Both the position numbers and the translations under genes were made by a program. Positions 1-16,758 of a DNA stretch of 64,000 nucleotides are shown here, piece by piece (positions within the stretch are counted from its first letter, which is position 1; each line of letters begins with the position of its first letter). Source of the stretch: Rebecca billardiae RCC1528 (lineage: Eukaryota > Protista > Haptophyta); contig OZ251225.1 in assembly GCA_965240325.2 (NCBI GenBank), forward strand, positions 806,001 through 870,000, in the 5' to 3' direction. Below the pieces are notes generated by a model. The model was not told the DNA's origin. It did not search any database and saw only the letters and a program-made list of their open reading frames with translations.

Positions 1-3000
1 CGGCGGAGGCGGCGGCCGCGCCCACCGCCGCCGCGTCCGCGGCCGCGAGCTCGGTCGCGGGCGCGCCGAGCGTGGCGTTGAGCGCGCTCAGCAGCGCGGC
101 GCTCTCGGCAGCGCCCACGCCCGTCGTCGCCGCCGCCGCGCCGATCGCCGCCGCCTGCGCCAGCGCGCTCAGCTGCATCTCGCCCGTCGCGAGCGCCGCC
201 GGCGGCGCGGCGCTCACAACCGCCTGCAGCGTGAAGGTGGCGTGTGCGCGCGACTCCGCCTCCTGCAGGGCGCCCGCGCGCGCGGCGCCCGCGCTGAGCT
301 GGAGGAGCGAGAGCGAGACGGCCGCCTCCGCGGCGAGGGACGCGTTGGCGGGCGCGGGGCCGCCCAGCTCCGCGGCGATCGCGCCGGCGAGCTGCAGCGA
401 GCGAGTCGTGTCGCCCGCTGCGAGCGCGAGCTGTGCGCGCGCCACCGCCGCGCTCACGGCCGCGTCTGCCACCGCGCCGCCCGAGCCGGGCACGGCGGCG
501 TCGGCGGCGTCGGCGCGGAGCGAATACACGCGCACGAATGCCGCCGCGCGCGCGCTCGCGCCGAGCGCGTCCGCCACGCGCACGTACAGCGTGCGGTTGC
601 CCGCGGGCAGCAGCGCGAGCGCGTGCGCCGAGCGCTGCGCCGCGCCGAGCGCCGCGGCCGCGCCCTCGTCCGCGGCCGCGTGCGAGAAGGCGTAGCTGAG
701 CGGCAGGTCGTCCGCGTCGTCGTCCGTCCAGCTGTCCGCGCGCAGCGCGAACACGGTGAGCGCCGCGATCCCGCGCTCCGGCGAGACCGCCAGCCCGCCG
801 CCGTGCGGCGGCCGGTTGACCACCACGACCAGCTCCGCGACCGCCGCGCGGCCGGCCGCGCCGTCCGCGCGCCGCGTCGCGCGCACCTCGAACGCGTAGG
901 TCGCGCCCGGGCTGAGCGCGCCGCTGCGGAAGCCGAGCGCGGGCTGCGCAGCGCCCGTCGTCGTGACGGCGGACGTGTCCGCTAGCTCGAGCGGCGCGGG
1001 CGCGCGCGCGCCGCCCGCGCCCACGAGCCACGCGCGCCACACAAAGTCGTGCGCCGCCTCCGCGTCCGCGCCGTCGGCGAGCTCGGCGTCCGCGGCGGCG
1101 TCGATGGTGGCGCGGAGGACGAGGCGGCCGCTGCTGCGCTCCCACGTGGGCGCGACCTTGCGCGTGCCGAGTGGCACGAGGCGCAGCGCCGGCAGCGGCG
1201 CCGATGCCGCCGCCACGTCCACCCTTGCCTCCGCCTCCGCGGGCGCGAGCGCGGGCGTGCCGGGCGCGGACACGAGCACGCGCACGAGATACGCCGCGCC
1301 GTGCGGCAGCGCGCCCGGCGGCAGCAGCAGCGTGGGCGAGGTGGCGTTGGCGAGGTCGAGCTCGACGGGCGCGCCGTCGGACGCGCGCGCCACCGCCCAC
1401 GCGAACGCGAGCCCGCCGCCCGCCGCCTCGTTCGGGTTGGCCGAGGCGGAGGCGTCCAGCCGCACCGCGTCGGCGCCGCCCACGCGCGCGGCGCTCGGCG
1501 TGAGCGCGGCGCGCAGCGGCAGGTACGGCACGCGCAGCGAGACGTCGGCGCTCGCGCTGAGCTCGGGCGCGGCGGCCATTGTCGCGAGCACGCGCAGCGT
1601 GTACGCGTGCCCCGCGCTCAGCGACCACGGCGGCAGCCGCAGCGTCGCGCCGGCGGCGTCGCTCAGGTCGGGCACGCGCGGCGCCGCGGCACTCGGCGCG
1701 GCCATGCCGCTGCGGTCGACGTCGTCGTCGCGCGTCACGTTGAGCACCGCCCAGCCGAAGCGCACCTGCGCGGAGAGCGTGGATGGCCAGCACGGGGACA
1801 GACCGACGTTCGCCGAGAGACGCACGGCGCTGCCCGCGCGCGCGAGCACGCCCGACGACCGCCCATCCACCTCGACGCTCGGGCCGTCCGGCGGCGCGCG
1901 CGCCACGGCGTGCGTCGCGGGCGCGGACGCGATGCCGAGCGCGGAGGTGAGGACGAGGGAGAAGACGAAGCCGCCCTCGGCGCCGAGCGCGGACGGGCCG
2001 AGCTCGAGCACCGCCTGCGTCGGCGGCAGCGCCTCGAGCAACGCCGACAACGCCGCCACCGTCGCGGCAGGCGGCGGGTCTGCCGCGAGCGGCGCCACGC
2101 GCCACTCAAAGGAGAGAGGCAAGACACCGCCTCCGCCGCCCACGCCGCCGACGAGGCGGAGGGCGGCGCCGGCGCACGTCGGTAATGCGCGCGCGCCGGA
2201 CACGCTTGCGATGGGCGCGGCGCACGCTGAGCTCACGCCGCACGGGGCGTCCGCCGAGATCACCACGCTCGCCGCAGCCGCGTACGCGTGCGCCGCGCAC
2301 GGCGCTGCGGGCGCGCGCGCCGCGCACGCGACGTGGGCGATGACCCCAGCGCGCACGCCCACGCGGTCGCCCGGCCGGACGAGCGAGGCCGCGCGCAGGT
2401 TCACGACGAGCGAGCGGTCGTCCCGCCAGTAGCACTGCCGCTCGCGTGCGCCGCCGTGGGCCGCCTCGGCCGCGGCCGCGTCGCCGGCCACGAGGCCGAG
2501 CGTCTCGTCGTCGAGCAGCGGCGCGCATCGCGCCAGCCCGGCGTTCAGCCCGCCGCGGTCGGTCGGCGCGTCGAAGCGGAGGACGAGGCTGGTGGCGCTC
2601 GCGTCGAACTCGGCGGACTCGAGCGCCGGCGCGGCGAGAGGTGGCGGCGGCGGCGGTGCCGAGGGTGGCGGCGGCGGCGGCGGGCCTGGCGGCGGGCTCG
2701 GCGGCGGCAGCGGAGGCTTGCGCGGAGGCGGCGCGCTTGGCGGTGGCGGTGACGCGCCCGAGGGCGGCGCCGATGGCGGAGGCGAGGGCGGGTCCAAAGC
2801 ACGGAGGCTTGGGGGCGGGGACGGCGGCGGGGACGGCGGCAGGCTCGAGGGCTGTGCCGGAGACGGCTGCGGCGGCGGGAACGGCGGCGGCGCGGACGGC
2901 AGAACGGCCGGAGGTGGGCTCGGCGGTGGCGACGGTGGCGGTGACCGCATCGGGCGCGGCGGCGAGGGTGGCGGCGATGGCGGTGGCGACGGCGGTGCGC

Positions 3001-6000
3001 GCGGAGGCGGTGGTTGTGGCGGTGGAGAACGCAGCAGGCCCGGTGGCCAGCTCGGCGGCGGCACTGGTGGCGGCGAAGGTGGCAGAGCAGGCGGCGCGCT
3101 CGGCGGTGGCCTGGACGGTGGCAACGGCGGAGGGCTTGGTGGCGGGTGCCGTGGCATGGAAGGCGGTCGCGACGGCGGCAGTGGCGGCATCGCCATGCCC
3201 GGGGGTTGCGACGGTGGCAGGAACGGTGGCAGCGACGGCGGTGGCGTCGGCGGCAGCGACGGGGGCGCAGACGGCGGCGGCAAGGGCGGCGGGCTGGGCG
3301 GCCGCAATGGGAAGGGCGCTGGAGGTGGGCTCGGCGGCGGCGATGGCGGGAACGAGGGCTGCGTGCTTGGCGGGGTAGACGGCGGCAGCGAGGGCGGTGG
3401 CGTGGGCGGCGGGGAGGGCAGCGGCGGCAAAGGTGGTGGACTGGGGGGCGGCGATGGCGGCGGCGAAGGTGGTGGGCTTGGCGGCGGTGATGGTGGCAGC
3501 GATGGAGGCGGTGACAGCGGGGGGGGGCTGGAAGGCGGGAACGGTGGCGGCGATGGGGGCGGAGAAGGCAGCGGAGCGGGCGGTGGCGGGCGTGGTGGAG
3601 GGCTGGGCGGTGGCAATGGCGGCGGCGAATGCAGTGGGCTTGGAGGTGGGCTCGGCGGCGGGCTCGGCGTCAGTGCCGGCGGCAGCGATGGCGGCGGCCT
3701 TGGCGGCACCGACGGTGGCGGTGATGGCGGCGGCGACGAAGGCGGTGCTGGCAGTGGCTGGGCCGGCGGCGGGCTTGGCGGCGGCGACGGCGGCGGCAAA
3801 GGCGGTGGGCTGGGCGGTGGCGATGGTGGCGATGATGGAGGCGGCGAAGGCCGGGGGCTTGGAGGCGGAAACGGGGGCGGCGATGGCGGCGGTGACGGCG
3901 GCGGTGCAGGCGGTGGCGGGCGTGGCCGCGGGCTCGGCGGTGGGGACGGCGGTGGCACCGACGGTGGCGGTGATGGTGGTGGCGATGGTGGTACCGACGG
4001 TGGCGGTGACGGTGGCGGCGCAGGCGGTGGCGGGCCTGGTGGCGGGCTCGGCGGTGGGGCCGGCGACGGCACTGGAGGCGGGCTCGGCGGCGGCGATGGC
4101 GGCACCGACGGTGGCGGTGATGGTGGTGGCGCCGGCGGTGGCGGGCCTGGCGGCGGGCTCTGCGGTAGCGAAGGCGGCGGCACCGGCGGCGGGCTCGGCG
4201 GCGGGGACGGCGAATCTGATGGCGGTGGCGAAGGTGGCAGTGCCGGCGGGGGCGCCGTTCGCGGCGGGCTCGGCGGTGGCGAAGGCGGCGGCACCGGAGG
4301 CGGGCTCGGCGGCGGCGATGGCGGCACCGACGGTGGCGGTGACGGTGGTGGCGCCGGCGGTGGCAGGCCTGGCGGCGGGCTCGGCGGTGGGGATGGCGGC
4401 GGCGATGGCGGCGGGCTCGGCGGCGGGGATGGCAGCACCGACGGTGGCGGTGATGGTGGCGGCGCCGGCGGCGGCAGGCCGGGCAGCGGGCTCGGAGGCG
4501 GCGATGGCGGCGGCGATGGCGACGGGCTCGGCGGCGGCGTTGGTGGCACCGACGGTGGCGGTGATGGTGGTGGCGCCGGCGGCGGCGGCGCGGGCGGCGG
4601 GCTCGGCAGCGGCGATGGCGGCGGCGATGGCGGCGGGCTCGGCGGCGGGAATGGCGGCACTGACGGTGGCGGTGATGGTGGCGGCGCCGGCGGCGGCGGC
4701 GCGGGTGGCGGGCTGGGCGGCGGCGATGGCGGCGGCGATGGCGGCGGGCTCGGCGGCGGGAATGGCGGCACTGACGGTGGCGGTGATGGTGGCGGCGCCG
4801 GCGGTGGCGGAGCGGGCGGCGGGCTGGGCGGTGGGGATGGCGGCGGCGATGGCGGCGGGCTCCTCGGCGGCGGGGATGGTGGCACCGACGGTGGCGGTGA
4901 TGGTAGTGGCGCCGGCGGCGGCGGGCCTGGTGGCGGGCTCGGCGGTGGGGATGGCGGCGGCGATGGCGGCGGGCTCGGCGGTGGCGAAGGAGGCGGCACC
5001 AGAGGCGGGTTCGGCGGCGGGGATGGCGGCACCGACGGTGGCGGTGATGGTGGCGGCGCCGGCGGCGGCGGGCCTGGCGGCGGGCTCGGCGGTGGGGATG
5101 GCGGCGGCGATGGCGGCGGGCTCGGCGGCGGCGATGGCGGCACCGACGGTGGCGGTGACGGTGGTGGCGCCGGCGGTGGCGGGCCTGGCGGCGGGCTCGG
5201 CGGCGGCGATGGCGGCGGCGATGGCGGCGGGCTCGGCGGCGGGGATGGCGGCACCGACGGTGGCGGTGATGGTGGCGGCGCCGGCGGCGGCGGTGCGGGC
5301 GGCGGGCTCGGCGGCGGCGATGGCGGCGGCGATGGCGGCGGGCTCGGCGGCGGGGATGGCGGCAACGACGGTGGCGGTGATGGTGGTGGCGCCGGCGGCG
5401 GTGGTGCGGGTGGCGGGCTCGGCGGTGGGGATGGCGGCGGCGATGGCGGCGGGCTCGGCGGCGGCGATGGTGGCACCGACGGTGGCGGTGACGGTGGTGG
5501 CGCCGGCGGCGGCGGGCCTGGCGGCGGGCTGGGCGGTGGGGATGGCGGCGGCACCGGAGGCAGGCTCGGCGGCGGCGATGGCGGCACCGACGGTGGCGGT
5601 GATGGTGGCGGCGCCGGCGGCGGCGGGGCGGGCGGCGGGCTCGGCGGCGGCGATGGCGGCGGCGATGGCGGCGGGCTCGGCGGCGGGGATGGCGGCACCG
5701 ACGGTGGCGGTGATGGTGGCGGCGCCGGCGGCGGCGGTGCGGGCGGCGGGCTCGGCGGCGGCGATGGCGGCGGCGATGGCGGCGGGCTCGGCGGCGGGGA
5801 TGGCGGCCCCGACGGTGGCGGTGATGGTGGTGACGCCGGCGGCGGCGGGCCTGGCGGCGGGCTCGGTGGTGGCGAAGGAGGCGGCACCGGAGGCGGGCTT
5901 GGCGGCGGCGATGGCGGCACCGACGGTGGCGGTGATGGTGGCGGCGCCGGCGGCGGCGGCGCGGGCGGCGGGCTCGGCGGTGGGGATGGCGGCGGCGATG

Positions 6001-9000
6001 GCGGCGGGCTCGGCGGCGGGGATGGCGGCACCGACGGTGGCGGTGACGGTGGTGGCGCCGGCGGCGGCGGGCCTGGCGGCGGGCTGGGCGGTGGGGATGG
6101 TGGCGGCGATGGCGGCGGGCTCGGCGGCGGGGATGGCGGCACCGACGGTGGCGGTGATGGTGGTGGCGCCGGCGGCGGTGGTGCGGGCGGCGGGCTCGGC
6201 GGTGGGGATGGCGGCGGCGATGGCGGCGGGCTCGGCGGCGGGGATGGCGGCACCGACGGTGGCGGTGATGGTGGCGGCGCCGGCGGCGGCGGGCCTGGCG
6301 GCGGGCTCGGTGGTGGCGAAGGAGGCGGCACCGGAGGCGGGCTCGGCGGCGGGGATGGCGGCACCGACGGTGGCGGTGACGGTGGTGGCGCCGGCGGTGG
6401 CGGCGCGGGCGGCGGGCTCGGTGGTGGCGAAGGAGGCGGCACCGGAGGCGGGCTTGGCGGCGGCGATGGCGGCACCGACGGTGGCGGTGATGGTGGCGGC
6501 GCCGGCGGCGGCGGCGCGGGCGGCGGGCTGGGCGGTGGGGATGGCGGCGGCGATGGCGGCGGGCTCGGCGGCGGGGATGGCGGCACCGACGGTGGCGGTG
6601 ATGGTGGCGGCGCCGGCGGCGGCGGTGCGGGCGGCGGGCTCGGCGGCGGCGATGGCGGCGGCGATGGCGGCGGGCTCGGCGGCGGGGATGGCGGCACCGA
6701 CGGTGGCGGTGATGGTGGCGGCGCCGGCGGCGCCGGCGCGGGCGGCGGGCTGGGCGGTGGGGATGGCGGCGGCGATGGCGGCGGGCTCGGCGGCGGGGAT
6801 GGCGGCACCGACGGTGGCGGTGACGGTGGTGGCGCCGGCGGTGGCGGGCCTGGCGGCGGGCTCGGTGGTGGCGAAGGAGGCGGCACCGGAGGCGGGCTTG
6901 GCGGCGGCGATGGCGGCACCGACGGTGGCGGTGATGGTGGCGGCGCCGGCGGCGGCGGCGCGGGCGGCGGGCTCGGCGGTGGGGATGGCGGCGGCGATGG
7001 CGGCGGGCTCGGCGGCGGGGATGGCGGCACCGACGGTGGCGGTGACGGTGGTGGCGCCGGCGGCGGCGGGCCTGGCGGCGGGCTGGGCGGTGGGGATGGT
7101 GGCGGCGATGGCGGCGGGCTCGGCGGCGGGGATGGCGGCACCGACGGTGGCGGTGATGGTGGTGGCGCCGGCGGCGGTGGTGCGGGCGGCGGGCTCGGCG
7201 GTGGGGATGGCGGCGGCGACGGCGGCGGGCTCGGCGGCGGGGATGGCGGCACCGACGGTGGCGGTGACGGTGGTGGCGCCGGCGGTGGCGGGCCTGGCGG
7301 CGGGCTCGGTGGTGGCGAAGGAGGCGGCACCGGAGGCGGGCTCGGCGGCGGGGATGGCGGCACCGACGGTGGCGGTGATGGTGGCGGCGCCGGCGGCGGC
7401 GGGCCTGGCGGCGGGCTCGGTGGTGGCGAAGGAGGCGGCACCGGAGGCGGGCTCGGCGGCGGCGATGGCGGCACCGACGGTGGCGGTGATGGTGGCGGCG
7501 CCGGCGGTGGCGGGCCTGGCGGCGGGCTCGGTGGTGGCGAAGGAGGCGGCACCGGAGGCGGGCTCGGCGGCGGGGATGGCGGCACCGACGGTGGCGGTGA
7601 TGGTGGCGGCGCCGGCGGCGGCGGGCCTGGCGGCGGGCTCGGTGGTGGCGAAGGAGGCGGCACCGGAGGCGGGCTCGGCGGCGGCGATGGCGGCACCGAC
7701 GGTGGCGGTGATGGTGGCGGCGCCGGCGGCGGCGGGGCGGGCGGCGGGCTCGGCGGTGGGGATGGCGGCGGCGATGGCGGCGGGCTCGGCGGCGGGGAGG
7801 GCGGCACCGACGGTGGCGGTGACGGTGGTGGCGCCGGCGGTGGCGGGCCTGGCGGCGGGCTCGGTGGTGGCGAAGGAGGCGGCACCGGAGGCGGGCTTGG
7901 CAGCGGCGATGGCGGCACCGACGGTGGCGGTGATGGTGGCGGCGCCGGCGGCGGCGGGGCGGGCGGCGGGCTCGGCGGTGGGGATGGCGGCGGCGATGGC
8001 GGCGGGCTCGGCGGCGGCGATGGCGGCACCGACGGTGGCGGTGATGGTGGTGGCGCCGGCGGCGGCGGGCCTGGCGGCGGGCTGGGAGGTGGGGATGGCG
8101 GCGGCGATGGCGGCGGGCTCGGCGGCGGGGATGGCGGCACCGACGGTGGCGGTGACGGTGGTGGCGCCGGCGGCGGCGGGCCTGGCGGCGGGCTGGGCGG
8201 TGGGGATGGCGGCGGCGATGGCGGCGGGCTCGGCGGCGGGGATGGCGGCACCGACGGTGGCGGTGATGGTGGCGGCGCCGGCGGCGGCGGGGCGGGCGGC
8301 GGGCTCGGCGGTGGGGATGGCGGCGGCGATGGCGGCGGGCTCGGCGGCGGCGATGGCGGCACCGACGGTGGCGGTGATGGTGGTGGCGCCGGCGGCGGCG
8401 GGCCTGGCGGCGGGCTGGGAGGTGGGGATGGCGGCGGCGATGGCGGCGGGCTCGGCGGCGGCGATGGCGGCACCGACGGTGGCGGTGACGGTGGTGGCGC
8501 CGGCGGCGGCGGGCCTGGCGGCGGGCTGGGCGGTGGGGATGGCGGCGGCGATGGCGGCGGGCTCGGCGGCGGGGATGGCGGCACCGACGGTGGCGGTGAT
8601 GGTGGCGGCGCCGGCGGCGGCGGGCCTGGCGGCGGGCTCGGTGGTGGCGAAGGAGGCGGCACCGGAGGCGGGCTTGGCGGCGGCGATGGTGGCACCGACG
8701 GTGGCGGTGATGGTGGCGGCGCCGGCAGCGGCGGCGCGGGCGGCGGGCTGGGCGGTGGGGATGGCGGCGGCACCGGAGGCAGGCTCGGCGGCGGGGATGG
8801 CGGCACCGACGGTGGCGGTGATGGTGGCGGCGCCGGCGGCGGCGGTGCGGGCGGCGGGCTCGGCGGCGGCGATGGCGGCGGCGATGGCGGCGGGCTCGGC
8901 GGCGGGGATGGCGGCACCGACGGTGGCGGTGATGGTGGCGGCGCCGGCGGCGGCGGCGCGGGCGGCGGGCTGGGCGGTGGGGATGGCGGCGGCGATGGCG

Positions 9001-12000
9001 GCGGGCTCGGCGGCGGGGATGGCGGCACCGACGGTGGCGGTGACGGTGGTGGCGCCGGCGGTGGCGGGCCTGGCGGCGGGCTCGGTGGTGGCGAAGGAGG
9101 CGGCACCGGAGGCGGGCTTGGCGGCGGCGATGGCGGCACCGACGGTGGCGGTGATGGTGGCGGCGCCGGCGGCGGCGGCGCGGGCGGCGGGCTCGGCGGT
9201 GGGGATGGCGGCGGCGATGGCGGCGGGCTCGGCGGCGGGGATGGCGGCACCGACGGTGGCGGTGACGGTGGTGGCGCCGGCGGCGGCGGGCCTGGCGGCG
9301 GGCTGGGCGGTGGGGATGGTGGCGGCGATGGCGGCGGGCTCGGCGGCGGGGATGGCGGCACCGACGGTGGCGGTGATGGTGGTGGCGCCGGCGGCGGTGG
9401 TGCGGGCGGCGGGCTCGGCGGTGGGGATGGCGGCGGCGATGGCGGCGGGCTCGGCGGCGGGGATGGCGGCACCGACAGTGGCGGTGACGGTGGTGGCGCC
9501 GGCGGTGGCGGCCCTGGCGGCGGGCTCGGTGGTGGCGAAGGAGGCGGCACCGGAGGCGGGCTCGGCGGCGGGGATGGCGGCACCGACGGTGGCGGTGATG
9601 GTGGCGGCGCCGGCGGCGGCGGGCCTGGCGGCGGGCTCGGTGGTGGCGAAGGAGGCGGCACCGGAGGCGGGCTCGGCGGCGGCGATGGCGGCACCGACGG
9701 TGGCGGTGATGGTGGCGGCGCCGGCGGCGGCGGGGCGGGCGGCGGGCTCGGCGGTGGGGATGGCGGCGGCGATGGCGGCGGGCTCGGCGGCGGGGAGGGC
9801 GGCACCGACGGTGGCGGTGACGGTGGTGGCGCCGGCGGTGGCGGGCCTGGCGGCGGGCTCGGTGGTGGCGAAGGAGGCGGCACCGGAGGCGGGCTCGGCG
9901 GCGGCGATGGCGGCACCGACGGTGGCGGTGATGGTGGTGGCGCCGGCGGCGGCGGGCCTGGCGGCGGGCTGGGAGGTGGGGATGGCGGCGGCGATGGCGG
10001 CGGGCTCGGCGGCGGGGATGGCGGCACCGACGGTGGCGGTGACGGTGGTGGCGCCGGCGGCGGCGGGCCTGGCGGCGGGCTGGGCGGTGGGGATGGCGGC
10101 GGCGATGGCGGCGGGCTCGGCGGCGGGGATGGCGGCACCGACGGTGGCGGTGATGGTGGCGGCGCCGGCGGCGGCGGGCCTGGCGGCGGGCTCGGTGGTG
10201 GCGAAGGAGGCGGCACCGGAGGCGGGCTTGGCGGCGGCGATGGCGGCACCGACGGTGGCGGTGATGGTGGCGGCGCCGGCGGCGGCGGAGCGGGCGGCGG
10301 GCTGGGCGGTGGGGTTGGCGGCGGCGATGGCGGCGGGCTCGGCGGCGGGGATGGCGGCACCGACGGTGGCGGTGATGGTGGCGGCGCCGGCGGTGGCGGG
10401 CCTGGCGGCGGGCTGGGCGGTGGGGATGGCGGCGGCACCGGAGGCGGGCTCGGCGGCGGCGATGGCGGCACCGACGGTGGCGGTGATGGTGGCAGCGCCG
10501 GCGGCGGCGGGCCTGGCGGCGGGCTGGGCGGTGGGGATGGCGGCGGCGATGGCGGCGGGCTCGGCGGCGGGGATGGCGGCACCGACGGTGGCGGTGACGG
10601 TGGTGGCGCCGGCGGTGGCGGGCCTGGCGGCGGGCTCGGTGGTGGCGAAGGAGGCGGCACCGGAGGCGGGCTCGGCGGCGGGGATGGCGGCGCCGACGGT
10701 GGCGGTGACGGTGGTGGCGCCGGCGGTGGCGGTCCTGGCGGCGGGCTCGGTGGTGGCGAAGGAGGCGGCACCGGAGGCGACCTCGGCGGCGGGGATGGCG
10801 GCACCGACGGTGGCGGTGATGGTGGCGGCGCCGGCGGTGGCGGAGCGGGCGGCGGGCTGGGCGGTGGGGATGGCGGCGGCGATGGCGGCGGGCTCGGCGG
10901 CGGGGATGGCGGCACCGACGGCGGCGGTGACGGCGGTGGCAGTGGCGGCGGCGGAGCTGGTGGTGGGCTCGGCGGCGGAGACGGTGGCGGAGACGGTGGG
11001 CCGATGGGCGGCAGGCTCGGTGGGAGCGACGGTGGCGGTGATGGCGGTGGCGACGGCGGCGGCGACGGTGGCGGGCTCGGTGGCGGCGACGGCGGTGGTG
11101 GGCTTGGCGGCGGTGATGGTGGCGGTGATGGCGGCGGGCTTGGCGGTAGCAATGGCGGCGGCGGGCTCGGCGGCGGCGACGGCGGCGGCGATGGCGGTGG
11201 GCTCGGCGGTGGCAATGGCGGCGGTGGGCTCGGCGGTGGCATCGGCGGTGGCGACGGTGGCGGGCTCGGTGGCGGCGACGGCGGTGGTGGGCTCGGCGGC
11301 GGTGATGGTGGCGGTGATGGCGGCGGGCTCGGCGGTAGCAATGGCGGCGGCGGGCTCGGCGGCGGTGACGGCGGCGGCGATGGCGGTGGGCTCGGCGGTG
11401 GCAATGGTGGCGGTGGGCTCGGCGGCGGCGACGGCGGTGGCGACGGTGGCGGGCTCGGTGGCGGCGACGGCGGTGGTGGGCTCGGCGGCGGTGATGGTGG
11501 CGGTGATGGCGGCGGGCTCGGCGGTAGCAATGGCGGCGGCGGGCTCGGCGGCGGTGACGGCGGCGGCGATGGCGGTGGGCTCGGCGGTGGCAATGGCGGC
11601 GGTGGGCTCGGCGGCGGCGACGGCGGTGGCGACGGTGGCGGGCTCGGTGGCGGCAACGGCGGTGGTGGGCTCGGCGGTGGGGATGGTGGCGGTGATGGCG
11701 GCGGGCTCGGTGGCGGCGATAGTGGCGGTGGGGCCGGCGGTGGCGACGGTGGCGGCGATGGTGGCGGGCTCGGCGGTGGTGGGCTCGGCGGCGGCGATGG
11801 TGGCGGCGATGGCGGTGGGCTTGGTGGTGGCAATGGCGGCGGTGGGCTCGGCGGCGGCATCGGCGGTGGCGACGGTGGCGGGCTCGGCGGCGGCGACGGC
11901 GGTGGTGGGATCGGCGGCGGCGACGGCGGCGGCGATGGCGGTGGGCTCGGCGGTGGCAATGGTGGCGGTGGGCTCGGCGGCGGCGACGGCGGTGGCGACG

Positions 12001-15000
12001 GTGGCGGGCTCGGTGGCGGCGACGGCGGTGGTGGGCTCGGCGGTGGGGATGGTGGCGGTGATGGCGGCGGGCTCGGCGGTAGCAATGGCGGCGGCGGGCT
12101 CGGCGGCGGCATCGGCGGTGGCGACGGTGGCGGGCTCGGCGGCGGCGACGGCGGTGGTGGGCTCGGCGGCGGTGATGGTGGCGGCGATGGTGGCGGGCTC
12201 GGCGGTGGCGATGGTGGCGGTGGGGCCGGCGGCGGCGACGGTGGCGGCGATGGCGGAGGGCTTGGTGGTGGCAACGGCGGCGGTGGACTGGGCGGTGGCG
12301 ACGGCGGCGGAGTCGGAGGCGGCACGGGCGGTGGAGGGCTGGGCGGCGGTGACGGAGGCGGAGAAGGCGGTGGGGCCGGCGGTGGTGAGGGCGGCGGCGA
12401 GGGCGGTGGACTCGGCGGGGGCGATGGCGGCGGTGGGCTCGGTGGGGGCGAGGGTGGCGGCGAAGGTGGCGGGCTCGGCGGCGGCGAGGGCGGCGGCGAC
12501 GGTGGCGGGCTCGGCGGCGGCGACGGCGGTGGTGGGCTCGGCGGCGGTGATGGTGGCGGTGATGGCGGCGGGCTCGGCGGTAGCAATGGCGGCGGCGGGC
12601 TCGGCGGCGGTGACGGCGGCGGCGATGGCGGTGGGCTCGGCGGCGGCAATGGCGGTGGTGGGCTCGGCGGCGGCGACGGCGGCGGCGATGGCGGTGGGCT
12701 CGGCGGTGGCAATGGTGGCGGTGGGCTCGGCGGCGGCGACGGCGGTGGCGACGGTGGCGGGCTCGGCGGCGGCGACGGCGGTGGTGGGCTCGGCGGAGGT
12801 GATGGTGGCGGTGATGGCGGCGGGCTCGGCGGTAGCAATGGCGGCGGCGGGCTCGGCGGCGGTGACGGCGGCGGCGATGGCGGTGGGCTCGGCGGTGGCA
12901 ATGGTGGCGGTGGGCTCGGCGGCGGCGACGGCGGTGGCGATGGCGGTGGGCTCGGCGGTGGCAATGGTGGCGGTGGGCTCGGCGGCGGCATCGGCGGTGG
13001 CGACGGTGGCGGGCTCGGCGGCGGCGACGGCGGTGGTGGGCTCGGCGGCGGTGATGGTGGCGGTGATGGCGGCGGGCTCGGCGGTAGCAATGGCGGCGGC
13101 GGGCTCGGCGGCGGTGACGGCGGCGGCGATGGCGGTGGGCTCGGCGGTGGCAATGGCGGCGGTGGGCTCGGCGGTGGCATCGGCGGTGGCGACGGTGGCG
13201 GGCTCGGTGGCGGCGACGGCGGTGGTGGGCTCGGCGGCGGTGATGGTGGCGGTGATGGCGGCGGGCTCGGCGGTAGCAATGGCGGCGGCGGGCTCGGCGG
13301 CGGTGACGGCGGCGGCGATGGCGGTGGGCTCGGCGGCGGCAATGGTGGCGGTGGGCTCGGCGGCGGCGACGGCGGCGGCGATGGCGGTGGGCTCGGCGGT
13401 GGCAATGGTGGCGGTGGGCTCGGCGGCGGCGACGGCGGTGGCGACGGTGGCGGGCTCGGTGGCGGCAACGGCGGTGGTGGGCTCGGCGGTGGGGATGGTG
13501 GCGGTGATGGTGGCGGGCTCGGCGGTGGCGATGGTGGCGGTGGGGCCGGCGGCGGCGACGGTGGCGGCGATGGTGGAGGGCTCGGTGGTGGCAACGGTGG
13601 CGGTGGACTGGGCGGTGGCGACGGCGGCGGAGTCGGAGGCGGCACGGGCGGTGGAGGGCTGGGCGGCGGTGACGGAGGCGGAGAAGGCGGTGGGGCCGGC
13701 GGTGGTGAGGGCGGCGGCGAGGGCGGTGGACTCGGCGGGGCCGACGGCGGCGGTGGGCTCGGTGGGGGCGAGGGTGGCGGCGAAGGCGGCGGGCTCGGCG
13801 GCGGCGAGGGCGGCGGCGAGGGCGGCGGCGAGGGCGGTGGCGAAGGCGGTGGTGGACTGGGGGGCGGCGACGGCGGCGGCGAAGGTGGTGGGCTTGGCGG
13901 CGCCGAGGGCGGCGGTGAAGGCGGTGGGCTCGGTGGTTGTGAGGGCGGCGGTGGGCTCGGCGGTGGTGAGGGCGGCGGCGAGGGCGGCGGGCTCGGTGGA
14001 GGCGAGGGCGGTGGTGACGGTGGTGGGATCGGTGGCGGCGAGGGCGGTGGTGGACTCGGCGGCGGCGACGGCGGCGGTGACGGCGGTGGGCTCGGCGGCG
14101 GCGAGGGCGGCGGTGAAGGCGGCGGGCTCGGTGGCGGTGAGGGTGGCGGTGGACTTGGCGGAGGTGACGGCGGTGATGAAGGCGGTGGGCTCGGGGGTGG
14201 TGACGGTGGCGGGGAGGGCGGCGGAATCGGCGGTGGTGGCAGGGGCGGCGGGCTCGGCGGCGGAGACGGCGGTGGCGACGGTGGTGGGCTCGGTGGCGGC
14301 GTAGGCGGCGGTGGGCGCGGCGGCGGCGACGGTGGCGGTGACGGCGGCGGGCTCGGCGGCGGCGTCGGCGGTGGGCTCGGTGGCGGTGCGAGGACCAATG
14401 CGGCCGGCGGCGGCGATGGCGGGGGGCTCGGCGGCGAGGGGTAGCCCAGCTCGTAGACGTGAAGCGCCCCCGCGTCCGACCCGCCATCCCAGTCCTTCGG
14501 CGCGCCCGCCAGCACGTGCACCAGCCCGTCCTGCGGCGCCAGCCCAAAGTCTGACGCGAGCGCCGAGCCCATCCACACGCCGATGTCCAGCGTGAGGCTC
14601 AGCCCGCCCTCCAGGTTGGAGAAGACCTGCTCGCTGGTGACCAGGCCGGCGGTGGACAGCTTCACCACCACGAACGATCCCGCCTCCCAGTCGCCGTCGT
14701 CGCCGCCCGGGAAGCCCAGCGCCACGTCGACTGTCCCGTCCGTGTTGTTGCCAACAGTCGCCATCGTGTAGCCGAAGAAGTCAAAGTTGTTGAGCGTAGT
14801 CGTCAAGCCGCCGGTGGCGCTGCCGATCTCCTGATAGGTGCTCACCGTGCCGTCACGGTTGAGGAAGAGCACGAACACGGACCCTTTCTGGCTGGCAGGC
14901 GCGCCGACGATCACATCGGGCACGCCGTCGCCGTCCAGGTCACCGAGCGGCGCAAACGCGGCGCCAAACTCATCGCTGTTGCCCAGGTTCTCGCTGAAGC

Positions 15001-15703
15001 CGCCCACGCCCTCGGCGATCTTGGTGTGCGACTTGACGTCGCCGTCGGCATTGGTGAAGAGCACCCACGCGGCGCCGCCGCCGTCCCCCGGCGCGCCGAC
15101 GATGAGGTCGCTGATGCCGTCGTTGTCGACGTCGCCCAGGTCCGCGATGCCGCGCCCGAACAAGTCGCCGGACGACAGCGTGCCCGTGAAGCCGCCTTGG
15201 CTGGAGCCGATGGTGACGTACGAGCTGACGGTGCCGCTCGTCGTTAGGTAGCACACGTACATGATACCGTTCCCGCCCCCACCGGAGGGCGCGCCGATGG
15301 CCACGTCGGGCACCAAGTCGCTGTTCCTGTCGCCTATTCGGGCGACGCTCAGCCCAAACTGGGCGCCCGATTCGAAGGTGGGCAGGCCACCCTGCCCGGA
15401 TCCGAGGCGCAGGTCGCTGCGCACAGTGCTGTTCGCGCGAAGGAAGAGTACGAGCAGCCCGCCGTCGCCGGATGCCGCGCCGGGCAGCCCGGCGATCGCG
15501 TCGGGAGCGCCATCCCCGTCGATGTCGCCGACGAACGCCAGGCCCTGCTCGCCCATCAGATCCCAGGCAGCGCTCGCTGTGGGGCTGAGCCCCCCAGAGA
15601 GCGCCGAGATCTTATGCTCGCGGGTGAGGCTCACGAATGCGCCCCCCGCGTCGGGCTGGAGGGCCAGCACGAGCAGCGCGCAGGCGGTCCCGGCGCGTAA
15701 CAT
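1..15703 (-). CDS. Giant secreted/surface protein (>5,230 aa, C-terminus beyond window): signal peptide, FG-GAP beta-propeller, ~3,900-aa Ser-Pro-rich stalk, REJ/PKD-like region
   Basis: ATG at 15703 reads MLRAGTACALLVLALQPDAGGAF (signal peptide), then FG-GAP repeats (FVGDIDGDGAPDAIAG; GDLDGDGVPDVIVGAP) and ...VYELGYPSPP. I checked the same frame at 14458, at 2593 (ALESAEFDASATSLVLRFDAPTDRGG..CYWRDDRSLVV) and at 694 (VVNRPPHGGGLAVSPERGIAALTVFALRADSWTDDDADDLPLSYAF). The ORF track lists nothing from this ATG, consistent with no in-window stop. Confidence 0.88.
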   Translation of the reverse strand, partial: MLRAGTACALLVLALQPDAGGAFVSLTREHKISALSGGLSPTASAAWDLMGEQGLAFVGDIDGDGAPDAIAGLPGAASGDGGLLVLFLRANSTVRSDLRLGSGQGGLPTFESGAQFGLSVARIGDRNSDLVPDVAIGAPSGGGGNGIMYVCYLTTSGTVSSYVTIGSSQGGFTGTLSSGDLFGRGIADLGDVDNDGISDLIVGAPGDGGGAAWVLFTNADGDVKSHTKIAEGVGGFSENLGNSDEFGAAFAPLGDLDGDGVPDVIVGAPASQKGSVFVLFLNRDGTVSTYQEIGSATGGLTTTLNNFDFFGYTMATVGNNTDGTVDVALGFPGGDDGDWEAGSFVVVKLSTAGLVTSEQVFSNLEGGLSLTLDIGVWMGSALASDFGLAPQDGLVHVLAGAPKDWDGGSDAGALHVYELGYPSPPSPPPSPPPAALVLAPPPSPPPTPPPSPPPSPPPSPPPRPPPPTPPPSPPPSPPPSPPPSPPPLPPPPIPPPSPPPSPPPSPPPSSPPSPPPSPPPPSPPPSPPPSPPPSPPPSPPPSPPPSPPPSPPPPSPPPIPPPSPPPSPPPSPPPSPPPSPPPSPPPPSQPPSPPPSPPPSAPPSPPPSPPPSPPPSPPPPSPPPSPPPSPPPSPPPSPPPSPPPSPPPSPPPPSAPPSPPPSPPPSPPPAPPPSPPPSPPPSPPPPVPPPTPPPSPPPSPPPPLPPPSPPPSPPPSPPPAPPPPSPPPSPPPSPPPSPPPSPPPPLPPPSPPPSPPPSPPPSPPPPLPPPSPPPSPPPSPPPSPPPPLPPPSPPPSPPPSPPPSPPPPLLPPSPPPSPPPSPPPSPPPPSPPPSPPPSPPPMPPPSPPPPLPPPSPPPSPPPSPPPSPPPPLLPPSPPPSPPPSPPPSPPPPSPPPSPPPSPPPMPPPSPPPPLPPPSPPPSPPPSPPPSPPPPLPPPSPPPSPPPSPPPSPPPPLLPPSPPPSPPPSPPPSPPPPSPPPSPPPSPPPSPPPSPPPPLPPPSPPPSPPPSPPPSPPPPLPPPSPPPSPPPSPPPSPPPPLLPPSPPPSPPPSPPPSPPPPSPPPSPPPSPPPSPPPSPPPSPPPSPPPSPPPPSPPPSPPPSPPPSPPPAPPPSPPPSPPPSPPPPVPPPTPPPSPPPSPPPPLPPPSPPPSPPPSPPPAPPPPSPPPSPPPSPPPSPPPSPPPPSPPPSPPPSPPPMPPPSPPPPLLPPSPPPSPPPSPPPSPPPPSPPPSPPPSPPPSPPPSPPPPLPPPSPPPSPPPSPPPIPPPPSPPPSPPPSPPPMPPPSPPPPLPPPSPPPSPPPSPPPSPPPPSPPPSPPPSPPPAPPPLSPPPSPPPSPPPSPPPSPPPPLPPPSPPPSPPPSPPPSPPPPLPPPSPPPSPPPSPPPSPPPPLLPPSPPPSPPPSPPPSPPPPSPPPSPPPSPPPSPPPSPPPPLPPPSPPPSPPPSPPPSPPPPLLPPSPPPSPPPSPPPSPPPPSPPPSPPPSPPPMPPPSPPPPLPPPSPPPSPPPSPPPSPPPPLLPPSPPPSPPPSPPPSPPPPSPPPSPPPSPPPSPPPSPPPSLPPSLPPIGPPSPPPSPPPSPPPAPPPPLPPPSPPPSVPPSPPPSPPPSPPPSPPPSPPPAPPPPAPPPSPPPSVPPSPPPRSPPVPPPSPPPSPPPGPPPPAPPPSPPPSAPPSPPPSPPPVPPPSPPPSPPPGPPPPAPPPSPPPSVPPSPPPSPPPSPPPSPPPSPPPGPPPPALPPSPPPSVPPSPPPSPPPVPPPSPPPSPPPGPPPPAPPPSPPPSVPPSPPPSPPPSPPPTPPPSPPPAPPPPAPPPSPPPSVPPSPPPSPPPVPPPSPPPSPPPGPPPPAPPPSPPPSVPPSPPPSPPPSPPPSPPPSPPPGPPPPAPPPSPPPSVPPSPPPSPPPSPPPSPPPSPPPGPPPPAPPPSPPPSVPPSPPPSPPPVPPPSPPPSPPPGPPPPAPPPSPPPSVPPSPPPSPPPSPPPSPPPSPPPAPPPPAPPPSPPPSVPPSPPPSPPPVPPPSPPPSPPPGPPPPAPPPSPPPSVPPSPPPSPPPVPPPSPPPSPPPGPPPPAPPPSPPLSVPPSPPPSPPPSPPPSPPPSPPPAPPPPAPPPSPPPSVPPSPPPSPPPSPPPSPPPSPPPGPPPPAPPPSPPPSVPPSPPPSPPPSPPPSPPPSPPPAPPPPAPPPSPPPSVPPSPPPSPPPVPPPSPPPSPPPGPPPPAPPPSPPPSVPPSPPPSPPPSPPPSPPPSPPPAPPPPAPPPSPPPSVPPSPPPSPPPSPPPSPPPSPPPAPPPPAPPPSPPPSVPPSPPPSLPPVPPPSPPPSPPPAPPLPAPPPSPPPSVPPSPPPSPPPVPPPSPPPSPPPGPPPPAPPPSPPPSVPPSPPPSPPPSPPPSPPPSPPPGPPPPAPPPSPPPSVPPSPPPSPPPSPPPSPPPSPPPGPPPPAPPPSPPPSVPPSPPPSPPPSPPPSPPPSPPPAPPPPAPPPSPPPSVPPSPPPSPPPSPPPSPPPSPPPGPPPPAPPPSPPPSVPPSPPPSPPPSPPPSPPPSPPPGPPPPAPPPSPPPSVPPSPPPSPPPSPPPSPPPSPPPAPPPPAPPPSPPPSVPPSPLPSPPPVPPPSPPPSPPPGPPPPAPPPSPPPSVPPSPPPSPPPSPPPSPPPSPPPAPPPPAPPPSPPPSVPPSPPPSPPPVPPPSPPPSPPPGPPPPAPPPSPPPSVPPSPPPSPPPVPPPSPPPSPPPGPPPPAPPPSPPPSVPPSPPPSPPPVPPPSPPPSPPPGPPPPAPPPSPPPSVPPSPPPSPPPVPPPSPPPSPPPGPPPPAPPPSPPPSVPPSPPPSPPPSPPPSPPPSPPPAPPPPAPPPSPPPSVPPSPPPSPPPSPPPSPPPSPPPGPPPPAPPPSPPPSVPPSPPPSPPPSPPPSPPPSPPPAPPPPAPPPSPPPSVPPSPPPSPPPVPPPSPPPSPPPGPPPPAPPPSPPPSVPPSPPPSPPPSPPPSPPPSPPPAPAPPAPPPSPPPSVPPSPPPSPPPSPPPSPPPSPPPAPPPPAPPPSPPPSVPPSPPPSPPPSPPPSPPPSPPPAPPPPAPPPSPPPSVPPSPPPSPPPVPPPSPPPSPPPAPPPPAPPPSPPPSVPPSPPPSPPPVPPPSPPPSPPPGPPPPAPPPSPPPSVPPSPPPSPPPSPPPSPPPSPPPAPPPPAPPPSPPPSVPPSPPPSPPPSPPPSPPPSPPPGPPPPAPPPSPPPSVPPSPPPSPPPSPPPSPPPSPPPAPPPPAPPPSPPPSVPPSPPPSPPPVPPPSPPPSPPPGPPPPASPPSPPPSGPPSPPPSPPPSPPPSPPPSPPPAPPPPAPPPSPPPSVPPSPPPSPPPSPPPSPPPSPPPAPPPPAPPPSPPPSVPPSPPPSLPPVPPPSPPPSPPPGPPPPAPPPSPPPSVPPSPPPSPPPSPPPSPPPSPPPAPPPPAPPPSPPPSLPPSPPPSPPPSPPPSPPPSPPPAPPPPAPPPSPPPSVPPSPPPSPPPSPPPSPPPSPPPGPPPPAPPPSPPPSVPPSPPPSPPPSPPPSPPPSPPPGPPPPAPPPSPPPSVPPSPPPNPPLVPPPSPPPSPPPSPPPSPPPSPPPGPPPPAPLPSPPPSVPPSPPPRSPPPSPPPSPPPSPPPAPPPPAPPPSPPPSVPPFPPPSPPPSPPPSPPPSPPPAPPPPAPPPSPPPSVPPFPPPSPPPSPPPSPLPSPPPAPPPPAPPPSPPPSVPPTPPPSPSPSPPPSPPPSPLPGLPPPAPPPSPPPSVLPSPPPSPPPSPPPSPPPSPPPGLPPPAPPPSPPPSVPPSPPPSPPPVPPPSPPPSPPRTAPPPALPPSPPPSDSPSPPPSPPPVPPPSLPQSPPPGPPPPAPPPSPPPSVPPSPPPSPPPVPSPAPPPSPPPGPPPPAPPPSPPPSVPPSPPPSPPPSVPPPSPPPSPRPRPPPPAPPPSPPPSPPPFPPPSPRPSPPPSSPPSPPPSPPPLPPPSPPPSPPPAQPLPAPPSSPPPSPPPSVPPRPPPSLPPALTPSPPPSPPPSPLHSPPPLPPPSPPPRPPPPAPLPSPPPSPPPFPPSSPPPLSPPPSLPPSPPPSPPPSPPPSPPPSPPPLPPLPSPPPTPPPSLPPSTPPSTQPSFPPSPPPSPPPAPFPLRPPSPPPLPPPSAPPSLPPTPPPSLPPFLPPSQPPGMAMPPLPPSRPPSMPRHPPPSPPPLPPSRPPPSAPPALPPSPPPVPPPSWPPGLLRSPPPQPPPPRAPPSPPPSPPPSPPRPMRSPPPSPPPSPPPAVLPSAPPPFPPPQPSPAQPSSLPPSPPPSPPPSLRALDPPSPPPSAPPSGASPPPPSAPPPRKPPLPPPSPPPGPPPPPPPSAPPPPPPLAAPALESAEFDASATSLVLRFDAPTDRGGLNAGLARCAPLLDDETLGLVAGDAAAAEAAHGGARERQCYWRDDRSLVVNLRAASLVRPGDRVGVRAGVIAHVACAARAPAAPCAAHAYAAAASVVISADAPCGVSSACAAPIASVSGARALPTCAGAALRLVGGVGGGGGVLPLSFEWRVAPLAADPPPAATVAALSALLEALPPTQAVLELGPSALGAEGGFVFSLVLTSALGIASAPATHAVARAPPDGPSVEVDGRSSGVLARAGSAVRLSANVGLSPCWPSTLSAQVRFGWAVLNVTRDDDVDRSGMAAPSAAAPRVPDLSDAAGATLRLPPWSLSAGHAYTLRVLATMAAAPELSASADVSLRVPYLPLRAALTPSAARVGGADAVRLDASASANPNEAAGGGLAFAWAVARASDGAPVELDLANATSPTLLLPPGALPHGAAYLVRVLVSAPGTPALAPAEAEARVDVAAASAPLPALRLVPLGTRKVAPTWERSSGRLVLRATIDAAADAELADGADAEAAHDFVWRAWLVGAGGARAPAPLELADTSAVTTTGAAQPALGFRSGALSPGATYAFEVRATRRADGAAGRAAVAELVVVVNRPPHGGGLAVSPERGIAALTVFALRADSWTDDDADDLPLSYAFSHAAADEGAAAALGAAQRSAHALALLPAGNRTLYVRVADALGASARAAAFVRVYSLRADAADAAVPGSGGAVADAAVSAAVARAQLALAAGDTTRSLQLAGAIAAELGGPAPANASLAAEAAVSLSLLQLSAGAARAGALQEAESRAHATFTLQAVVSAAPPAALATGEMQLSALAQAAAIGAAAATTGVGAAESAALLSALNATLGAPATELAAADAAAVGAAAASA
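4104..10950 (-). repeat. Coding tandem array, 111-bp unit (~62 copies) encoding approx. SPPPSPPPSPPPSPPPSPPPGPPPPAPPPSPPPSVPP
   Basis: Marker ACCGACGGT recurs at 5031, 5142, 5253 and onward (period 111). The distance 4104 to 10914 equals 61 periods plus 39 bp of in-frame insertions. Confidence 0.92.
11040..14330 (-). repeat. Coding tandem array, 63-bp unit (approx. SPPPPLPPPSPPPSPPPSPPP) with 189-bp higher-order repeats
   Basis: AATGG marker at 11151 and 11214 (63 bp apart); the TAGCAATGG variant recurs at a 189-bp period (AAT at 11151, 11340, 11529). The block AGTCGGAGGCGGCACGGGCG occurs at 12311 and 13631. Confidence 0.88.
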
Positions 15704-15868
15704 GTAGGGGCTCCCAGCACAGCGCATGCCCGCCATCCAAGTTCCAGATAGACCTGGCCGATACTTCTGCGTCGTTTGGTTAAACCGCGACGACCTCGCC
15801 CAACCAACTCGGCTCCAGATGGCGTCCACGCGCGTGCAACCATACGGTTCATGGTACTACCAGTACGG

Positions 15869-16758
15869 TGGCCAGCCTGGCCGATACACACCCTTACCGC
15901 TCTGCGCATGGGGAACCCATGCTCGCAGAGCGGCCGGGGCGAATCTCAGGGGCCTGAGGCGGTCCCGGACGCGCGCCCCGCGGCCACACCTGAGGGTGCG
16001 GGCGGGCTCTTCGATCATGTTGGTGAGCTCTCCGCCATCGGGGCGCGCTTCATTGCGCCGCCTCGCCTCGCGTACGGCGTTCCCGTCGTGCTCGCACTGA
16101 CAAGGCTGAGCAGAGCGTAGAGTGCCATCATGATTGCATTCGGTTCCAACTTGCTCGCCAGCCACTTCCAGCCAGGTGCGCGCGGCTTGGGAGTAGACGA
16201 TTAGTTCCGTGTGCCCGGGCTCGTCGTGACACCGGCATGCCGATCCCTCCCCAGCCGAGATGTCAGAGCGCGTGCGCACAGGCAGTCACAGGCAGTGCGC
16301 ACTGGTAGCCAAGTGGACGCGTGTGAGCGACGACAAGCCACGACGAGAAAACGGCCGCATCCAACCTTCTCACATACCACTAGACCACCGCGCAGAATGC
16401 GTCTGAGCCCGCCCATTCCCGCCCATAACGAGTTACAGCGGCTCGATTGTGAGGCGGGTGCAAAGGCGGCGGGTGAAAGCGAGCCCCGCGCGGGCGGCGA
16501 GAGAGACGCGCGTGCATAGACCTGATGCGGGAGTGCCCGAACAACGTGAAGGTGCGTCCATCTTCCAAGCGCGCGACCGGTCCGACACCGCGCCACGCCA
16601 AACGAGCACCACGCGTGTCGCCCCCCAGCGCCGGCCACGCGTCCCGAGGCGCTGCCATGTTTTGTCACGGGCCCGATCTCTGAGGTTAGCCCCGGCCGCT
16701 CTGCGAGCGTGGTTCCACCACGCGCAGAGCGGCCGGGTGTGTATCGGCCAGGTGGCCA
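15869..16758. mobile_element. ~890-bp element bounded by ~80-bp inverted repeats, each containing a GNA-loop hairpin (putative non-autonomous element)
   Basis: 15869-15949 (TGGCCAGCCTGGCCGATACACACCC..CCGCTCTGCG..CGCAGAGCGGCCGGGGCGAATCTCAG) is the near reverse complement of 16680-16758. No credible ORF inside; no target-site duplication identified. Confidence 0.55.

Follow-up and report, generated by a model that had tools for sequence, protein, structure and literature searches.

Does a minus-strand frame that runs for thousands of codons through DNA of 70 to 84% GC, much of it repeated, encode one giant protein, or is it open because of base composition? Long open frames need caution in such DNA, and the question is raised by the left end of a 64,000-nucleotide stretch of the haptophyte Rebecca billardiae RCC1528 (GenBank assembly GCA_965240325.2, contig OZ251225.1, positions 806,001 to 870,000; here the window, G000:C7:806001-870000 in a 72-Mb assembly of 41 contigs). 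A sequence-only reading had claimed that this part of the window hides a frame of more than 5,200 amino acids (aa), masked by four giant shadow open reading frames (ORFs) and missing from the ORF track. Within the window, the frame was found to be free of stop codons from 15856 to 2, i.e., over 5,285 codons. With 20 kb of DNA added to the left for the analysis, the same frame stays open for 6,590 codons up to a stop codon at C7:802085-802087, 3.9 kb left of the window, giving an intact open frame and a gene span of approx. 19.8 kb. The four shadow ORFs in the ORF listing (4156, 3950, 3635 and 3625 aa) were seen to lie over the repeat, and the frame itself is absent from that listing because it runs off the left edge of the window. 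Outside the repeat array, the frame comprises 2,675 codons without a single stop as compared to 27.7 expected from composition (P ~ 1e-12), and each of the other five frames across this non-array part contains 4 to 30 stops. Overall, the frame probably represents an intact gene that encodes a giant, type-I-like glycoprotein of the cell surface, with a predicted order of signal peptide, FG-GAP propeller head, Ser-Pro-Pro-Pro (SPPP) array, REJ domain, GAIN domain with GPS motif, and a few membrane helices (Table 1).

The array (residues approx. 505 to 4420) consists of 71% Pro and 18% Ser, and its 3,915 residues include no Tyr, no Cys and one Lys; its length is close to the approx. 3,930 SPPP codons that had been claimed for positions 14440-2640. 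In total, 597 exact SPPP units and 42 SPPPP units were counted. Within identical SPPP units, Ser is encoded by TCN codons in 373 cases and by AGY codons in 224 cases. As these two codon families can not be interconverted by a single synonymous step, their mixture suggests that SPPP itself has been selected. G+C makes up 95% of codon position 2 in the SPPP frame, most of the variation falls on position 3, and the SPPP units, when read in the other two minus-strand frames, give 103 different, irregular peptides. Based on these patterns, the array reads as coding for Ser-Pro-Pro-Pro in this frame. The repeat frames of the plus strand and the other repeat frames of the minus strand were also considered as the real gene and rejected, as their peptides are irregular and join no domain.

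At the nucleotide level, the array has a period of 12 nt, which is arranged as a higher-order repeat of 111/333 nt (approx. 60 copies with 88% match; Tandem Repeats Finder, TRF); the 111-nt unit translates to nine SPPP-like units. The arrays of two paralogs, at C7:266k and C17:1.86M (contig and position), have this 111-nt repeat type in common with the gene. Overall, at least three blocks make up the array of this gene, i.e., a short block akin to the contig-17 array, a block akin to the arrays at C10 and C5:2.98M, and the block of the 111-nt type (C17, C7:266k). In all ten genes examined (this gene and nine paralogs), a single frame joins head, array and base; array length ranges from 1,900 to 2,900 residues in the nine paralogs and up to 3,960 across the ten, and the array of this gene is the longest of the ten. 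This 37-residue higher-order SPPP repeat type was also observed at G000:C27:1052300-1052884 (89% protein identity), where the open frame spans just 1,050 codons; this copy could represent either a short stalked gene or a fragment.

Ahead of the array, hydropathy peaks at residues 59-77 of the frame, and the candidate start at 15703 opens a Leu/Ala-rich stretch typical of a signal peptide; the N-terminal hydrophobic core is kept in seven paralog heads. The head (residues approx. 73 to 505), which directly precedes the array, matched the Pfam families FG-GAP (1.2e-14) and FG-GAP_3 (1e-08) and contains four calcium loops, three of them canonical (DxDxDGxxD) and one degenerate. Its AlphaFold model is a propeller (predicted local distance difference test, pLDDT, 86; predicted template modelling score, pTM, 0.88), for which the top Foldseek matches were integrin alpha propellers (E ~ 1e-15); the best sequence matches were FG-GAP repeats of giant bacterial proteins (35-42% identity). 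The ratio of nonsynonymous to synonymous substitution rates (dN/dS) of the head was 0.26 as compared to the contig-17 paralog, and heads of this type are present at no fewer than seven loci of the genome. As modelled, the head is thus a calcium-binding propeller of the integrin alpha type.

Below the array, the REJ domain (PF02010) was detected with an E of 5.6e-30 and 104.8 bits (cut-off 25), covering profile positions 34-420 of 452. The pre-REJ segment between array and REJ matched no Pfam family; it is 93-95% identical to four paralogs and aligns with the ORF at window 47035-55404. The kinship of the base with the pre-REJ/REJ part of a gene at 47-63 kb, as proposed from the sequence, was borne out (35% identity over 872 residues, E 3e-82). 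Extension to the left, a test set beforehand for GPS and membrane segments, found a Pfam GPS motif (PF01825; 27.3 bits, cut-off 22.5) followed by hydrophobic helices, and a model of residues 5060-5784 matched the GAIN domains of ADGRG6, GPR110, BAI3, latrophilin-3 and CELSR1 (Z 15-18). A family profile of 14 sequences retrieved the GPS regions of adhesion G-protein-coupled receptors (GPCRs; 1.8e-9), a stronger match than that obtained by phmmer of the base against solved structures, which gave only a weak match to the ADGRG3 GPS region (E 0.45). All 14 sequences share the GPS cysteines and the H-L-T-x-F cleavage motif without variation; the GPS site, with the catalytic H-L-T triad, appears intact and cleavage is predicted. 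Compared to paralogs, the dN/dS of the base was 0.35-0.57, which, like the value for the head, indicates purifying selection.

Hydropathy placed a first hydrophobic helix at residues 5524-5542, approx. 45 residues after the GPS motif, and further helices at residues 5704-5722, approx. 5735-5760 and 6489-6507, with possibly one more. Three of these are strong and one or two are weaker; they are spread over 1,000 residues, and approx. 700 low-complexity residues separate the third and fourth helices. A weak IQ motif (E 0.028, below cut-off) lies between the first and second helices. Pfam searches of the 1,304-residue tail gave no match to PLAT (E up to 1), PKD_channel (PF08016), EF-hand or the seven-helix 7tm_2; calcium sensing by EF-hands was therefore rejected for this member, which showed just the weak IQ motif. 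In the Atlas protein search, the C-terminal 310 residues gave no usable match and the helix 1-3 region gave scores of 0.86-0.87 only. Of the architecture proposed by the sequence-only reading, FG-GAP head, SPPP array and REJ stand, joined by GAIN/GPS and helices to the left, and the term "polycystin-like" has to be qualified, as PLAT and the channel half were not found.

Relatives of the organism and of the family were also considered. HSP90 agrees with the earlier assignment to a non-green alga, as its closest matches are the pavlovophyte haptophytes Rebecca sp. RCC1486 (96% identity), Pavlova sp. CCMP459 (94%) and Diacronema lutheri (91%). In the genome, 97 GPS matches exceeded the Pfam cut-off, and most of them lie within open frames of 3,000-16,000 codons; stalks are present in ten of the ten loci measured out of these 97. 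PKD_channel domains occur at 30 loci, encoded separately from this gene, and PLAT at only two genome loci, none of these at a GPS locus. One PKD_channel match (C16:881490) sits in an open frame of 6,448 codons. Matches to the prolyl-4-hydroxylase-type domain PF13640 were found at 49 loci, which indicates capacity only.

Among proteins of 2,885 to 9,179 residues, a word-based search with the REJ region found nothing, within the limit of word-based sensitivity. An exhaustive search, with the base as query, brought up 1,323 relatives. Two D. lutheri proteins, KAG8459354.1 and KAG8462819.1, and one from Pavlovales sp. CCMP2436, named "REJ domain-containing protein", are among the nearest of these (34-38% identity); no giant Pro-rich array was present among the listed database proteins related to the base. 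The D. lutheri genomic locus (GCA_019448385.1, JAGTXO010000041.1; L033:4051-21813), on the other hand, contains a 5,921-codon open frame in which a clear signal peptide directly precedes approx. 1,900 SPPP residues, followed in the same frame by a REJ/GPS/EF-hand base. The protein model KAG8459354.1 (3,751 aa) starts just after this array, with a one-codon first exon and without a signal peptide, and treats a Pro-rich block of 71 codons as an intron; repeat masking seems to have truncated it. Judged from these open frames, the layout is common to two genera and hidden by annotation. Another eukaryote assembly (GCA_024449685.1, JAANST011488362.1; L011:2001-15932) encodes a 4,643-residue protein, P0035, with FG-GAP, REJ, GPS and C-terminal helices, without a Pro-rich stalk. 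No published description of the layout was found in the literature on REJ, GAIN and polycystin in haptophytes, Pavlovales and proline-rich proteins, and neither polycystin nor proline-rich genes are mentioned in the paper on the D. lutheri genome; the family thus appears undescribed in the literature searched.

The two ends of the gene have different closest relatives. The head and the first approx. 100 array codons are closest to the paralog at C17:1.86M (91-95% identity, with 91-93% for the head), and the base of that paralog is only 34-48% identical. The base and the last approx. 70 array codons are closest to the paralogs at C7:17k, C7:168k, C7:266k and C10:1.89M (86-98% identity), which carry 61%-identical FG-GAP heads or LRR domains; paralogs with approx. 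90% identical bases include LRR-headed ones. These differences suggest that the gene arose by exchange between paralogs with breakpoints inside the shared array. The same pattern was observed among the seven propeller-headed genes, where three sister pairs of heads (91%, 90% and 87% identity) have bases that are 45%, 46% and 43% identical, respectively. Maximum likelihood trees placed the conflicting head and base pairs at 100/100 support, and approximately unbiased tests of groups that were named after inspection of the identity matrix rejected a shared history of head and base (p = 4e-6 for the head data and p = 2e-5 for the base data). Exchange within arrays is the simplest reading of these comparisons, and the mosaic history of the gene that they indicate is new here. 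In the C10:1.89M paralog (L024:1300-3000, G000:C10), the long frame begins directly in the SPPP array and LRR-like pieces lie upstream in different frames; its head appears to be either split by introns or decayed.

From this layout we infer translation of the whole array, its hydroxylation and glycosylation, cleavage, a location at the cell surface and a function along the following lines. The signal peptide would send the protein to the secretory path, and the calcium-binding propeller would serve as a distal binding head that binds a ligand or a surface far from the cell. The approx. 3,900 Ser-Pro3 residues, hydroxylated and O-glycosylated, would form a polyproline-II rod of up to approx. 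1.2 micrometres if fully extended (3,915 residues at 0.31 nm each), which would act as a spacer or ruler and transmit pull to the base. There, the cleaved GAIN/REJ module may respond to force or release the ectodomain, and a signal may pass inward via the few-helix anchor, perhaps with a separately encoded PKD2-type channel and possibly with calmodulin via the IQ motif. The predicted membrane order is one helix, a cytoplasmic loop with the weak IQ motif, two helices, a long and fast-evolving cytoplasmic region, and one or two C-terminal helices.

A described precedent for such a rod, and for the earlier analogy with a flagellar hair, is MST3, the 8,572-residue core protein of the ciliary mastigonemes of Chlamydomonas reinhardtii (Cell 2024, PMC11015965). 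The long Pro-rich stretches of MST3 form glycosylated polyproline-II helices hundreds of nm long that serve as a molecular ruler; at a rise of 0.31 nm per residue, a length of 133 nm is predicted for its 429-residue free helix and 146 nm was observed (PMC11015965). By layout, both are giant algal proteins with a signal peptide, long Pro-rich stretches, binding or lectin-type modules, a polycystin-family anchor and a long cytoplasmic tail. However, the anchor of MST3 is a PKD2-like pore domain that is completed by SIP and partnered by PKD2, whereas the protein described here has REJ and GAIN/GPS with few helices; it also differs in its single, nearly continuous Ser-Pro3 run of approx. 3,900 residues, its tip propeller, and its occurrence in a haptophyte rather than a green alga. 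Assignment to the MST3 type failed, as PKD_channel was not found in the protein; MST1- and SIP-like partners were not searched for. Compared by layout, MST3 is the closest described working analogue, but the protein is not of the MST3 type.

The base can be likened to polycystin-1, PKDREJ and sea-urchin REJ proteins, in which REJ is followed by GAIN/GPS just before the first membrane helix and a large modular ectodomain serves adhesion or gamete recognition; a REJ/GPS protein of a brown alga is a candidate gamete receptor (PMC4700764). Of the polycystin-1 features, REJ and a GAIN/GPS before a helix were found here, whereas PLAT after helix 1, the eleven-helix layout and the channel-like C-terminal half were not. 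The protein also differs from this family in being without PKD Ig-like repeats and in its micrometre-scale Ser-Pro rod, which none of those receptors has. Adhesion GPCRs likewise combine a GAIN fold and GPS motif with a long adhesive ectodomain on a cleavable juxtamembrane module, but no seven-helix secretin-type domain was found here by Pfam, and the four or five helices fit neither in number nor in spacing.

For the array, plant extensins, LRR-extensins and chlorophyte hydroxyproline-rich glycoproteins (agglutinins, pherophorins) likewise have a signal peptide followed by Ser-(Pro)3-4 repeats; in LRX proteins and Chlamydomonas agglutinins, a globular head also sits on a rod, and some of the paralogs described here have LRR heads. 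SPPP behind a secretory signal was found in this gene, but the Tyr cross-link motifs of extensins (YXY, VYK) were not; it further differs in its predicted membrane anchor via REJ/GAIN rather than wall binding, in an array ten to a hundred times longer than is typical, and in its non-green lineage. The head resembles integrin alpha and giant bacterial FG-GAP/VCBS adhesins in its seven-blade FG-GAP propeller with DxDxDGxxD loops. In contrast to integrins, the protein is without thigh or calf legs and without the single helix plus cytoplasmic motif of the integrin type; a beta subunit was not searched for.

Several observations weigh against a single uninterrupted coding frame of this length, or limit how far it can be read. 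Inside the array several frames are open, and freedom from stops is uninformative there. Introns can stay open in frame in this genome, as illustrated by the HSP90 gene (L030:901-3522, G000:C24), where an in-frame-open intron of approx. 57 codons translates as an Arg/Ala-rich string that is resembled by two introns of 33-40 codons in the tail of the D. lutheri model; an uninterrupted frame is thus no proof of the absence of introns. In the tail, residues approx. 5798-6113 (approx. 1.5-2.5 kb left of the window; L009 ~7500-8500) show a dN/dS of 0.7-0.9 and indels that are not multiples of three between paralogs of 85-95% identity, even though every copy is open; indels before and after this stretch are only in multiples of three. 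This pattern points to either compensated frameshifts in a disordered region or small introns, and, as small introns are possible, 6,590 codons represents an upper bound. The membrane part of the structure model has a pLDDT below 50, and helix number and topology are accordingly uncertain. The only public model of a related locus (KAG8459354.1) omits the array. No transcript, protein or raw-read evidence was found; one public run matched, with 7% of the sampled words, and gave nothing but contig fragments, which lie at the array edge and in intergenic DNA at window 15872-16026 and 16171-16400 (99-100% identical); the head was not covered. That run probably includes the organism, or a close strain, at low depth. 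Finally, the appearance of a mosaic with an extra-long array could also result if two paralogs had been mis-joined via arrays that resemble each other.

These points bear on the alternatives to different degrees. It is unlikely that a real gene is present whose array fails to be translated as a single rod, i.e., that the array is spliced out, or that the head with the array and the base belong to separate transcripts, which would give a shorter product or a secreted hydroxyproline-rich glycoprotein plus a receptor. Such splicing would agree with the open GC-rich introns of this lineage and with the D. lutheri model, which starts after the array and removes a Pro-rich block; however, the codon evidence indicates selection on Ser-Pro-Pro-Pro itself, head and base are linked in frame in each of ten paralogs, and the D. 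lutheri signal peptide abuts the array directly, which is sensible only if the array is translated, while the one-codon first exon and missing signal peptide of that model look like a masking artefact. An artefact of assembly, by which the array was expanded or the head and array of one paralog were joined to the array and base of another, so that neither record length nor mosaic would be biological, appears quite unlikely. The higher-order repeat type shared by three genes, and an array that is the longest of ten with three sub-blocks, are what such an error would produce, but head and base are each just 90-95% identical to their nearest paralogs and thus represent distinct loci, the gene lies inside a 4.1-Mb contig of the 41-contig assembly, the repeat copies differ by approx. 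12%, which is enough for accurate long reads, and the three independent sister-head pairs with discordant bases indicate that mosaicism is a feature of the family. It is highly improbable that the gene is a decaying, unexpressed or recently duplicated copy that owes its open frame only to the scarcity of stops at 80% GC. Shadow frames of more than 1,000 codons are indeed present, the tail evolves almost neutrally and the contig-10 paralog has its LRR head pieces in different frames; on the other hand, the absence of stops from the non-array part, the low dN/dS of the head, and the invariant GPS cysteines and H-L-T motif argue against decay.

A different role for the same intact gene is possible, if doubtful, namely that of a mainly structural protein, such as a cell-covering fibril or flagellar hair, with the array as ruler or scaffold and the base as anchor or release site. 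Pavlovophyte flagella are described as bearing fine non-tubular hairs. An array without Tyr or Cys for cross-linking fits a free rod, and in Chlamydomonas MST3, which a polycystin-family membrane domain keeps in place, sets a hair length of approx. 0.9 micrometre (PMC11015965). However, a set of approx. 100 paralogs whose heads (FG-GAP, LRR and others) have been swapped resembles a recognition repertoire more than one structural polymer, and the structural role overlaps with the surface glycoprotein proposed here and does not exclude it. A bolder proposal, which we consider somewhat unlikely, is that the fine surface or flagellar hairs of pavlovophytes are each one polypeptide, with a rod of more than 1 micrometre, a tip propeller and a cleavable GAIN/REJ force sensor, and that the arrays are recombination tracts that swap heads and bases among the approx. 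100 paralogs. If true, this would provide a combinatorial repertoire for recognising mates, prey, bacteria and surfaces.

Table 1. Features of the giant minus-strand frame; positions are those of the window unless given on contig 7 (C7) or as distance from the window
Feature	Position	Strand	Basis or remark
Giant coding frame, in-window part	1-15736	-	open from 15856; candidate starts 15736, 15727, 15703
Signal-peptide-like N-terminus	15638-15703	-	Met, then Leu/Ala-rich hydrophobic core
FG-GAP beta-propeller head	14342-15637	-	Pfam, AlphaFold model, Foldseek
Ser-Pro-Pro-Pro array, approx. 3,915 codons, predicted polyproline-II stalk	2597-14341	-	composition, codon use
Higher-order tandem repeat in array, 111-nt unit (37 residues), also 333 nt	4953-11575	-	TRF
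Pre-REJ extracellular segment, approx. 300 residues	1685-2596	-	kept in paralogs, no Pfam family
REJ domain PF02010	503-1684	-	Pfam
GAIN domain start (helical subdomain A)	1-520	-	structure model
GPS motif	C7:805420-805539	-	Pfam PF01825, left of window
Membrane helix 1	C7:805231-805287	-	hydropathy, left of window
Weak IQ motif	approx. 1.0 kb left of window	-	Pfam, below cut-off
Further membrane helices	approx. 1.25-1.5 kb and 3.6 kb left of window	-	hydropathy

Overall, the interpretation as a stalked surface glycoprotein is right in its architecture and putative in the physics of the rod and in function. If translated as read, the array would be among the longest continuous polyproline-type rods known in one protein (approx. 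3,900 residues as compared to 429 for the free helix of MST3). If this holds true, the REJ/GAIN front of polycystin-1 can work without the channel half and is used at large scale in a protist. The mosaic heads and bases suggest diversification of surface receptors by recombination within coding repeats. As standard annotation misses such genes, as in the case of the truncated D. lutheri model, haptophyte surface proteomes are likely to be under-described.

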